Shown here one piece after another: positions 34,211-54,065 of a stretch of 64,000 nt of DNA. A model generated the notes under the pieces. That model searched no databases, was not told where the DNA came from, and saw nothing but the letters and a program-made list of their open reading frames with translations. The stretch is from the sequence record NC_020851.1; one strand, given 5' to 3'. Each line of letters opens with the position of its first letter. Within the stretch, counting starts at the first letter, position 1. Both the position numbers and the translations under genes were made by a program.

Positions 34211-34285
34211 TACCCGTGATCGGACTCGAACCGATACTGTCGAAATTTTAAGTTTCGTGTCTACTGCCAATTGGACTACACGGGC
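34211..34285 (-). tRNA. trnL: tRNA-Leu(UAA), short variable loop
   Basis: GCCCGTG/CACGGGT acceptor, CGAAA-CTTAAAA-TTTCG anticodon arm, GGTTCGAGTCC T-loop; CCA not encoded. Confidence 0.85.
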
Positions 34286-34426: not shown

Positions 34427-34499
34427 TGCAGGTTGTGGGAATTGAACCCACCTTCGCCGTTTTATGAGAACGGTCCATTCACCAGATTGGTAAACCTGC
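34427..34499 (-). tRNA. tRNA with CAU anticodon (elongator Met or Ile2)
   Basis: GCAGGTT/AACCTGC acceptor, CCGTT-CTCATAA-AACGG anticodon arm, GGTTCAATTCC T-loop; no initiator features. Confidence 0.85.
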
Positions 34500-53023: not shown

Positions 53024-53046
53024 AAAAAAGAGGGTCTTGCGACCCC
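53024..53046 (-). terminator. Rho-independent terminator
   Basis: GGGGTC-GCAA-GACCCTC hairpin followed by T6. Confidence 0.8.
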
Positions 53047-53070
53047 CAGTAAAGTTAAGTGCGTTAATTA

Positions 53071-53214
53071 TCAACTTTTAGATGCAAACTTGCGTTCGAT
53101 TTTGATACCACGATACATGAGATTGTGGTTACGATTTGCGGTTTGCTCTGCCAACACAGCAGCTTTGTATGCTTCTGGGTTGTACTTAACACCACGATAA
53201 GTGATAGTAGACAT
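53071..53214 (-). CDS. DUF4278/GifB(IF17)-like peptide (47 aa)
   Basis: Manual translation MSTITYRGVKYNPEAYKAAVLAEQTANRNHNLMYRGIKIERKFASKS with two YRG motifs; GGAG RBS. Confidence 0.8.
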   Translation of the reverse strand: MSTITYRGVKYNPEAYKAAVLAEQTANRNHNLMYRGIKIERKFASKS

Positions 53215-53246
53215 GATTTTACTCCTAAAGTAATTGGATTTTTAGG

Positions 53247-53427
53247 CCCGTTCCTTTAGTCGTTTGCGTCCCAATAACATTCGGGATTTGACTCCTTCAT
53301 TGTCTCAACCAACTCAATCCTAAAGTCATTACCAATGTTCTCATTTTTCTGCATACGCAGGATGATAGAATCAGTTTGCTGACAGGTGAGGGTTGTGTAG
53401 AATAATAGTTCTAACATGGGATGAACG
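53247..53427 (-). ncRNA. Second glutamine-riboswitch-like aptamer with an ORF-sized P2 insertion
   Basis: 5' half CGUUCAUCCC (53427-53418) and 3' half GGGACGCAAACGACUAAAGGAACGGG (53272-53247). Confidence 0.65.
53256..53417 (-). CDS. Small protein (53 aa) nested within a riboswitch-like RNA
   Basis: Manual translation MLELLFYTTLTCQQTDSIILRMQKNENIGNDFRIELVETMKESNPECYWDAND. Confidence 0.65.
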   Translation of the reverse strand: MLELLFYTTLTCQQTDSIILRMQKNENIGNDFRIELVETMKESNPECYWDAND

Positions 53428-53429
53428 CT

Positions 53430-53474
53430 CCGTTCCGCGACTTACTTGCGTCAGAGTTTCCTCTGATGAACGAT
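53430..53474 (-). ncRNA. Glutamine-riboswitch-like aptamer (glnA/Downstream-peptide type)
   Basis: AUCGUUCA-UCAGAG-GAAA-CUCUGA-CGCAAGUAAGUCGC-GGAACGG: P1 CGUUC/GAACG, perfect GAAA-capped P2, CGCAAGUAA junction; upstream of a DUF4278-like gene. Confidence 0.75.
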
Positions 53475-53501
53475 AGGTCTATTATAGACCCTATACTGTA
53501 T

Positions 53502-54065
53502 TTAGTCAACCCCACACTCAGATTTGTTAAAAATAACGGATGTTGTCATTTTATTCAATGCTTCATCACCATAATTATCAAGCATATATTCACACATTTT
53601 AGAAAAAATTCTAGGAGATTTACTAGTGAACAAATCATTAATTTCAGATTTAATAGAACGAATAAAAAATTTAAGTTCTTCTCTATTCGTATATTTGTCG
53701 GAAAGTAGATCATACCTTTTAAAAAGACGAAAGTATTTTTCTCTATCAATCTCTTTGATAAATCTTTTTGCAATAACCATTTTTCTTATAATTTTTTCAA
53801 GTTGTTCATAATCATCATGATACTCAGGCAAATCTAAAGACTCAAAATAAGATTTTTTAACTTTAAGTGTTGAATACAAAAACCAAATTTCATCATCCAC
53901 AAGAGAAAGATCATCATCTGATAATGCAGAAATACTTTCGGGATTTAAAAATAAAACATCATTAATACAAGACAAAAAAAGTTTTAATTTACAATCTACT
54001 AAAGGTGAAATTCTTTTTGGTCTTTGAAGATCAGATGGAGTTAGGGGAATCATTTCGAGTGTCAT
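53502..54065 (-). CDS. AT-rich hypothetical protein with its own early-type promoter
   Basis: 187-aa ORF; hairpin AGCACC/GGTGCT plus GTCACA element at 54105-54130. Confidence 0.55.
   Translation of the reverse strand: MTLEMIPLTPSDLQRPKRISPLVDCKLKLFLSCINDVLFLNPESISALSDDDLSLVDDEIWFLYSTLKVKKSYFESLDLPEYHDDYEQLEKIIRKMVIAKRFIKEIDREKYFRLFKRYDLLSDKYTNREELKFFIRSIKSEINDLFTSKSPRIFSKMCEYMLDNYGDEALNKMTTSVIFNKSECGVD

Follow-up and report, generated by a model that had tools for sequence, protein, structure and literature searches.

A glutamine riboswitch doublet of Synechococcus phage S-SKS1 best read as two nested aptamers, the inner one holding a protein gene in its P2 loop

The stretch of DNA analysed here (64,000 nucleotides, hereafter the window) derives from Synechococcus phage S-SKS1 and is 100% identical to NC_020851. 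On its minus strand, which carries the whole feature, two adjacent units resembling the glutamine-I riboswitch aptamer (glnA motif, RF01739) precede a small gene of the DUF4278 type, and the second unit encloses a 53-codon open reading frame (ORF). The reading that fits best is that of a single canonical glutamine-I aptamer, with a second, circularly permuted aptamer enclosed by its P3 helix. From comparison of many related elements we consider this nested fold probable for the family, and the fuller explanation, in which the nested double aptamer is joined to the regulation proposed below, is held with moderate confidence.

Glutamine-I aptamers are three-way junctions in which P3 is flanked by a loop-E motif (E-loop); CGUUC/GGAACG, the strand CGN and a long-range pair together surround the ligand (PMC6698751). 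In the nested fold the outer domain would consist of P1, formed by CGUUC 53472-53468 with GAACG 53253-53249, the P2 of unit 1 (P2(1)), the strand CGC, the E-loop AGUA/AAA and the P3 helix AGUCG/CGACU. The inner domain would have the hairpin GAACG-GAG-CGUUC 53435-53423 as its P1, and as its P2 (P2(2)) the helix UCCCA/UGGGA, whose loop houses the 53-amino-acid (aa) gene. In the side-by-side register, each unit would instead close on its own P1. Since the P1 strands are invariant, only the long-range linchpin, the pair between the third base of CGN and the base after GGAACG, can decide between these registers.

Homologous units were collected by blastn, which gave 392 cyanophage records with the gene pair, and 195 distinct elements were parsed from two pattern scans of IMG/VR viral metagenome contigs. 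Elements of the S-SKS1 type with a 5-bp P3 constitute class S (86 distinct), those with a longer, 8-position P3 constitute class L (n = 100), and alignment A3 comprises 46 compact elements. All covariation and GAG-linker counts given here are raw, without phylogeny correction.

The linchpins of these relatives favour the nested register. Both are paired in 100/100 class L elements when read as nested (outer GC80/CG20, inner CG100); read side by side only 20% are paired, and the other 80 of the 100 would place G opposite G and C opposite C. The compact elements of A3 agree, since alignment positions 33-109 (GC32/CG14) and 54-87 (paired in 46/46) are complementary in the nested register, whereas side by side the paired fraction is 30.4% and 32/46 would again have G.G and C.C. 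Every element with CGG in unit 1 has G after the GGAACG of that unit, CGC in unit 2 and C after the second GGAACG; there are 85 distinct elements of this kind, about 41 of them with an ORF. Furthermore, RNAalifold predicted the nested topology de novo from the 46 compact elements, including the GAACG/CGUUC hairpin. The spacer between the units, parsed with 0-30 nucleotides (nt) allowed, was 3 nt in 94 elements, 4 nt in 23 and 5 nt in two, and thus 3-5 nt in 119/119. An earlier note on this DNA had placed 7 nt between the units; from the GAACG of unit 1 to the CGUUC of unit 2 there are actually 3 (GAG).

The two junction segments, J1 of unit 1 and J2 of unit 2, divide the E-loop between them. 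Among the relatives AGUA is found in J1 only (always as AAGUA), and (G/A)AA before GGAACG is found in J2 only. Given this split and the glutamine-I architecture, we infer that the two junctions supply both strands of one canonical E-loop and P3. In class S all five positions of the P3 helix AGUCG/CGACU are paired in 86/86 sequences, with compensatory changes at position 2 (GC83/AU2/UA1) and position 5 (GC80/AU6). Six of the eight class L positions are 97-100% paired, and here positions 5 (GC86/AU9/GU5) and 8 (UA66/GC29/AU3/UG2) covary. Class L also keeps two mismatches, C.A at position 3 (91/100) and A.C at position 6 (85/100), which may be protonated wobble pairs or some other conserved feature of non-canonical type; position 3 of class S is a U-A pair. 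Rare synonymous variants of the ORF track the change in J1 (Asn/His AAU/CAU in 4/4, Asp GAU in 2/2). The element L161 combines an S-SKS1-type P3, AGUCG/CGACU, with informative linchpins. Intramolecular mini-P3 hairpins (AG-CCGA-CU), which cmscan forces on the units, were rejected because in class L the bases of J1 at positions 5 and 8 covary with those of J2, and because the class S sequences are unable to fold in this way. The complementarity of AGUCG and CGACU noticed earlier is thus borne out as a pairing between the units; the accompanying picture of two independent aptamers that touch is not. The helix corresponds to P3 in the canonical glutamine-I architecture.

P2(2) is likewise maintained across the ORF. 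Its positions 1-4 are paired in 129-130 of the 130 ORF-bearing elements, with one to four pair types per position, among them CG90/UA40 at position 3 and CG66/AU39/UA20/UG4 at position 4. As the 5′ partner strand is not part of the ORF, the covariation must act at the RNA level. The adjoining strand of unit 2 (ls2) is CGC in 128/130, and P2(1) also covaries in the relatives. The expected covariation of P1 and P2 was accordingly found for P2 only, the P1 strands being invariant.

Judged from its sequence evolution, the nested ORF codes for a protein under purifying selection. It is annotated in S-SKS1 as the coding sequence (CDS) SWZG_00277 and belongs to phrog_504 and T4-like gene cluster 430. 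Of six length classes of nested ORFs, five have a median ratio of non-synonymous to synonymous substitution rates (dN/dS) of 0.15-0.37 and the 54-aa class one of 0.62, variability is highest at third and lowest at second codon positions, and Cys12 and Cys47 are invariant. On these three features a non-coding structured insert was rejected, and they substantiate the conservation on which the earlier reading of the ORF depended. AlphaFold predicts a two-helix hairpin (predicted local distance difference test score, pLDDT, 80); a structure search with this model returned cyanophage hypothetical proteins only, and NCBIfam and Pfam searches with the protein gave no match.

As had been noticed, the ORF is enclosed by P2 of unit 2: the AUG directly adjoins the 5′ strand, and the 3′ junction contains the final codons together with the stop. 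This placement is general. The AUG begins at position 4-6 of the P2(2) 5′ strand in 127/130 ORF-bearing elements, and the stop begins +10 or +13 from CGC in 124/129. The last five codons (Trp-Asp-Ala-Asn-Asp) display zero synonymous variation, compared with a third-position heterozygosity of 0.5-0.7 in the interior, and the four-fold degenerate Ala codon is GCA in 71/71 sequences. The linker GAG, which creates the Shine-Dalgarno-like GGAG, was present in 74/78 ORF-bearing class S elements versus 0/21 compact set-1 elements.

The downstream gene encodes a 47-aa protein (phrog_5049) in which the YRG motif occurs twice. The RefSeq/GenBank record of S-SKS1 lacks a CDS for it, and homologues are annotated in other cyanophages. 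Against DUF4278 (PF14105) the protein scored 24.9 bits with a cut-off of 25.3, a borderline match over profile positions 26-55 of 57, and there was no NCBIfam match. Two YRG motifs are found in 172/185 downstream genes of the relatives, and the S-SSM5 homologue carries a DUF4278 annotation. The assignment to the DUF4278 type is in keeping with these features. Glutamine riboswitches have been linked to DUF4278/IF17-like genes, and short IF17-like proteins lack the C-terminal residues needed for interaction with glutamine synthetase (GS) (Klahn 2018, PMC6212724). The label of GS inactivator is for this reason a lead only: the 47-aa protein matches only the DUF4278 part of IF17, and of the DUF4278/IF17-like peptide proposed earlier it is the DUF4278 part that finds support. 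In freshwater-type loci (L128, L160, L166, L173) a second small basic conserved ORF, e.g. MSQVKTKNNWQLILIKQQKEKEQRKHQAKLAMAMR or MKKINVLQLIKEQKQKENRRHQA..., stands after the DUF4278 gene, and L156, L159, L188, L196 and L241 also belong to the set in which such an ORF follows or replaces that gene.

The arrangement suggests how the element might regulate. Both sites would bind glutamine, and the shared P3 would make their folding interdependent. In the bound fold G 53248, the linchpin base, would be drawn into the core of the outer aptamer, which would loosen the helix CCUAAA/UUUAGG, in which CCUAAA would act as an anti-Shine-Dalgarno (anti-SD) strand and which would cover part of the AGGAG Shine-Dalgarno site 53226-53222; the DUF4278 gene would thereby be switched ON, as in cyanobacterial gifB, for which a model has been published in which glutamine binding frees the ribosome site (PMC6212724). 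In set-2/freshwater-type relatives the linchpin base is also the first base of the anti-SD, CUCUUUA, which pairs with UAAGGAG, and CCUAAA of S-SKS1 starts 2 nt past the linchpin. Because an anti-SD beside the linchpin resembles the gifB arrangement, the DUF4278 gene is most likely glutamine-ON and, in the nested fold, governed by the outer aptamer.

The nested ORF may respond in the opposite direction. Its GGAG is made up of the end of GGAACG, the linchpin G and AG, and its AUG lies within P2(2), so the bound fold should mask initiation: with GGAG and AUG buried, the nested ORF would be OFF. Conversely, ribosomes on the ORF must open P2(2), P3 and, at termination, the 3′ strand of outer P1, which would block the fold. 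Early in infection, glutamine would thus decide reciprocally which of two small proteins is made. The OFF effect is something we infer purely from this layout, and class L and set 2 speak against it, as their linker is GAU and they hence have no GGAG. The reciprocal toggle of the two ORFs is favoured here as a tentative proposal. The wider idea of a two-way translational toggle in which ribosome traffic feeds back on sensing and the P2 loops serve as exchangeable slots for paralogous two-cysteine mini-proteins is, if anything, slightly more doubtful. The earlier suggestions that ribosome transit unfolds the second aptamer, and that the whole would be a nitrogen-sensing circuit, may reasonably be entertained.

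The main rival to the toggle is translational coupling, by which the riboswitch would govern the nested ORF, and ribosomes ending at UAA 53258-53256 would melt the 3′ strand of outer P1 and CCUAAA/UUUAGG, so that the DUF4278 gene is co-expressed. The geometry is consistent with this, as the stop lies 4 nt before GGAACG, a ribosome terminating there would be expected to reach as far as the anti-SD or close to it, the position of the stop is nearly constant (above), and the downstream start of the relatives is 19-79 nt away (median 32). However, 65/195 elements without an ORF in P2(2) keep the same downstream gene and platform, which argues that coupling is not the general mechanism, and the DUF4278 gene has a strong AGGAG of its own. 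We regard coupling as unlikely.

Returning to the nested fold, several points must be noted that weigh against it. The P1 strands never vary, and hence no direct covariation bears on the choice of P1 partner. In S-SKS1 and its marine clade the four linchpin combinations are all C:G and compatible with both registers, and the calculated nearest-neighbour energies (unconstrained −61.9, nested −59.2 and side-by-side −57.0 kcal/mol) do not discriminate; for these two reasons the nested fold of S-SKS1 itself is transferred by homology, from relatives that share its P3 and E-loop layout. There may be strain in the 3-nt loop of the inner hairpin, whose first G is also needed for the linchpin pair. 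The S-SKS1 E-loop has AAA and not GAA, and RF01739 aligned with unit 1 at 25.0 bits (E = 0.005 in a 701-nt search), under the gathering score of 35 bits. Finally, no assay of binding or expression of any phage copy was found in the literature searched.

A rival reading is the published view of side-by-side tandem riboswitches, which the earlier note took as well; in it unit 1 (53472-53430) would act on the nested ORF and unit 2 (53427...53248) on the DUF4278 gene, with AGUCG/CGACU as a kissing contact in a pseudo-cooperative pair. RF01739 aligns unit 1 alone, both side-by-side linchpins of S-SKS1 are valid C:G pairs, transcription completes unit 1 first, the unconstrained minimum free energy structure has unit 1 in the side-by-side register, and a 2022 review counts glutamine doublets as independent and pseudo-cooperative (PMC9481103). 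Against this, the linchpins of most class L and compact elements would be mismatched as described, neither unit possesses a separate P3 or more than one half of the E-loop, and a spacer of at most 5 nt leaves no space for an expression platform of unit 1. We find this view improbable; the marine clade may use the side-by-side register transiently. That the second aptamer was destroyed by insertion of a small gene cassette, and that its flanking halves persist only as recombination scars or coding sequence, would accommodate the four architectures given below (conserved halves could be recombination sites), and it is highly improbable given the compensatory changes that hold P2 together across the ORF in 130 distinct elements, the conserved ls2 CGC, and the frozen synonymous sites of overlapped codons that the P3 pairing uses.

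The doublet forms part of a minus-strand transcription unit of about 450 nt (53509-53024) composed of promoter, unit 1, unit 2 with its ORF, the DUF4278 gene and a terminator (Table 1). The transcript should start a few nt 5′ of unit 1, judging from the promoter, and in related loci TATAAT likewise lies ~8-10 nt upstream of the first CGUUC. This CGUUC is unchanged in 114/120 parsed relatives, the other six comprising two CGUUCG flanks and four unparsed. The 3′ half motif ACGCAA-N6-14-GGAACG has two occurrences in the 64-kb window, both of them here, where 0.00 were expected.

Table 1. Parts of the S-SKS1 transcription unit, in window positions.
Feature	Position	Strand	Remarks
Sigma-70-type promoter	53481..53509	-	TTGACT 53509-53504, 17-nt spacer, TATAAT 53486-53481; 11/12 consensus matches
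5h1 CGUUC, putative outer P1 5′ strand, ligand-core helix	53468..53472	-	
P2(1) compact hairpin UCAGAG-GAAA-CUCUGA	53451..53466	-	
ls1 CGC	53450-53448	-	last C = linchpin base
AAGUA, 5′ half of E-loop	53447-53443	-	structural roles from PMC6698751
P3 5′ strand AGUCG	53438..53442	-	partner CGACU 53262-53258
GGAACG with linchpin G, then AG	53436-53431, G 53430	-	
Unit 2 CGUUC	53423-53427	-	inner P1 region 53423..53436
Shine-Dalgarno-like GGAG	53431-53428	-	10 nt 5′ of nested AUG
P2(2) 5′ strand UCCCA	53417..53421	-	last A opens start codon
Nested 53-codon ORF	53256..53417	-	AUG 53417-53415, UAA 53258-53256
P2(2) 3′ strand UGGGA	53269-53273	-	
ls2 CGC	53266-53268	-	UGGGA and CGC within Trp-Asp-Ala codons
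P3 3′ strand CGACU	53258-53262	-	AAA separates CGACU from ls2 CGC
3′ half of E-loop, AAA	53255-53257	-	stop UAA overlaps AAA and CGACU
3h2 GGAACG with linchpin G 53248, putative outer P1 3′ strand	53248..53254	-	
Expression platform of downstream gene	53222..53246	-	CCUAAA 53246-53241 pairable with UUUAGG 53229-53224
47-aa DUF4278-type gene	53071..53214	-	
Intrinsic terminator GGGGGUC-GCAA-GACCCUC with U6	53024..53047	-	

The S-SKS1 architecture, with a compact P2(1) and an ORF in P2(2), was found in 90/195 elements. Both P2 loops are compact in 49, both contain an ORF in 40, and in 16 the ORF is in P2(1) and P2(2) is compact. In three annotated myoviruses matching RNA halves flank the same ORF. 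The P2(1) loop of other phages carries an ORF of 61-69 aa, and in P-RSM4 (L004) unit 1 also encloses an ORF (cluster 429), whose stop is in a different frame of the motif. By inspection the loop-1 ORFs (phrog_6471, 65-69 aa) and the loop-2 ORFs (phrog_504, phrog_13397 and others) look paralogous, since in both families a hydrophobic N-terminus is combined with two Cys about 35 residues apart; L004 (1314-1520), L014, L016, L021, L030 and others are examples. The loop ORFs of L033, L106 and L109 have a signal-peptide-like start, MKFLLPLLLLTSP....

Further variants were observed. In L065 a third aptamer-like unit upstream of the doublet (~−269 to +50 relative to the unit junction) makes a triplet. 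A conserved hairpin, GGUAACA(A/G)U(C/U)GUUACC, lies directly 5′ of the first CGUUC in S-SSM5 (L003 ~1457-1472) and P-RSM4 (L004 ~1286-1301); S-SKS1 is without it. The pattern AAGTA-N4-14-GGAACG-NNN-CGTTCA, run over 596 Gb of genome contigs, gave chance matches, and among the matches listed only L253 and L321 looked genuine. L253 (JBIPLY010000594.1), a 3.7-kb contig in a metagenome-assembled genome of Acetobacteraceae, has a typical ORF-bearing set-2 element and is probably a cyanophage contig mis-binned into the bacterial assembly. Elsewhere in the window are two tRNA genes, at 34211-34285 and 34427-34499 (minus strand; 56.1 and 54.4 bits).

On comparative sequence evidence, which supports its structure strongly, the element adds a new architecture to the glutamine riboswitches, and its layout recurs in hundreds of cyanophage sequences. 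Glutamine riboswitches are well studied, with structures solved, and where they occur as doublets, as they often do, the two copies have been classed as tandem switches acting independently. If the doublets are truly one nested fold, they would represent an undescribed natural route to a two-site sensor, and the way in which such RNAs are modelled, searched for and assayed would change; the covariance models in use do not detect the ORF-bearing units at all. A gene that lies in the stem loop of a riboswitch, begins in the stem and ends in the junction would couple ligand sensing to translation, and it offers dual RNA and protein coding constraints for study. If the proposed regulation is true, many marine and freshwater cyanophages read host glutamine early in infection and choose between small proteins.

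How the element relates to the known glutamine riboswitches was assessed by covariance models and by individual motifs. With Rfam gathering thresholds only the two tRNAs were reported over the window, and there was no match at the riboswitch locus. The search with the glnA and Downstream-peptide models proposed in the earlier note was productive for RF01739, which matched unit 1 as given above, and not for RF01704, which had no match in the window at E ≤ 10 and for which there is no 3′ helix flanking GGAACG; in ACG-2014b and S-SSM5 its matches were sub-threshold only. Unit 2 could not be aligned by cmscan owing to the 147-nt insert in P2, and the unit 2 of a compact relative (L195) scored 40.1 bits. 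The view that two glutamine-aptamer-like units are present is supported. The ligand-core nucleotides of RF01739 (CGUUC, GGAACG and CG(G/C)) occur twice in the window and are near-invariant in the relatives. The Watson-Crick linchpin of RF01739 is present in the nested register, a P2 lies next to P1 in both cases (the P2(1) hairpin and the long-range P2(2) helix around the ORF), and the E-loop (AGUA/GAA) with P3 is obtained only by combining J1 of unit 1 with J2 of unit 2.

The likeness to glutamine-I comprises the CGUUC/GGAACG core, CG(C/G), the linchpin, the E-loop next to P3, the three-way junction, the DUF4278 genes and the anti-SD beside the linchpin. It differs in that the phage P3 would be formed by strands ~180 nt apart that enclose a second aptamer and not by a hairpin, in the protein gene held in a P2 loop, and in the C:G linchpin of the marine clade, which is as in glutamine-II. 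With glutamine-II (Downstream-peptide, RF01704) the phage RNA shares the binding-site nucleotides, the linchpin polarity CGC...GGAACGG and DUF4278-type downstream peptides; unlike it, the phage RNA has no 3′ P2 helix or pseudoknot arrangement. Glutamine-II is carried by the marine Synechococcus and Prochlorococcus hosts. Since only type 2 aptamers have been reported in marine picocyanobacteria (Klahn 2018, PMC6212724), the phage element differs from the type of its host.

Glutamine riboswitches in T4-like cyanophages, and tandem copies of them, were already known. In the 2010 alignment the units were aligned separately and the ORF-bearing second unit was left as flanking sequence, and neither a nested fold nor an ORF within P2 was found described in the literature searched, which left out Ames & Breaker 2011 and Ren et al. 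2015. The tandem catalogue lists 157 doublets and 4 triplets as independent and pseudo-cooperative (Sherlock et al. 2022, PMC9481103). With two aptamer units next to each other ahead of a single gene, the catalogued doublets are probably identical with the elements described here, and what sets the present reading apart is that the units would be nested and share P3 and E-loop. A related system is the tandem glycine riboswitch, which likewise has two ligand sites, one expression platform, inter-aptamer contacts and an interdependent fold. The glycine aptamers stand side by side, however, and neither is inside a helix of the other, circularly permuted or ORF-bearing.

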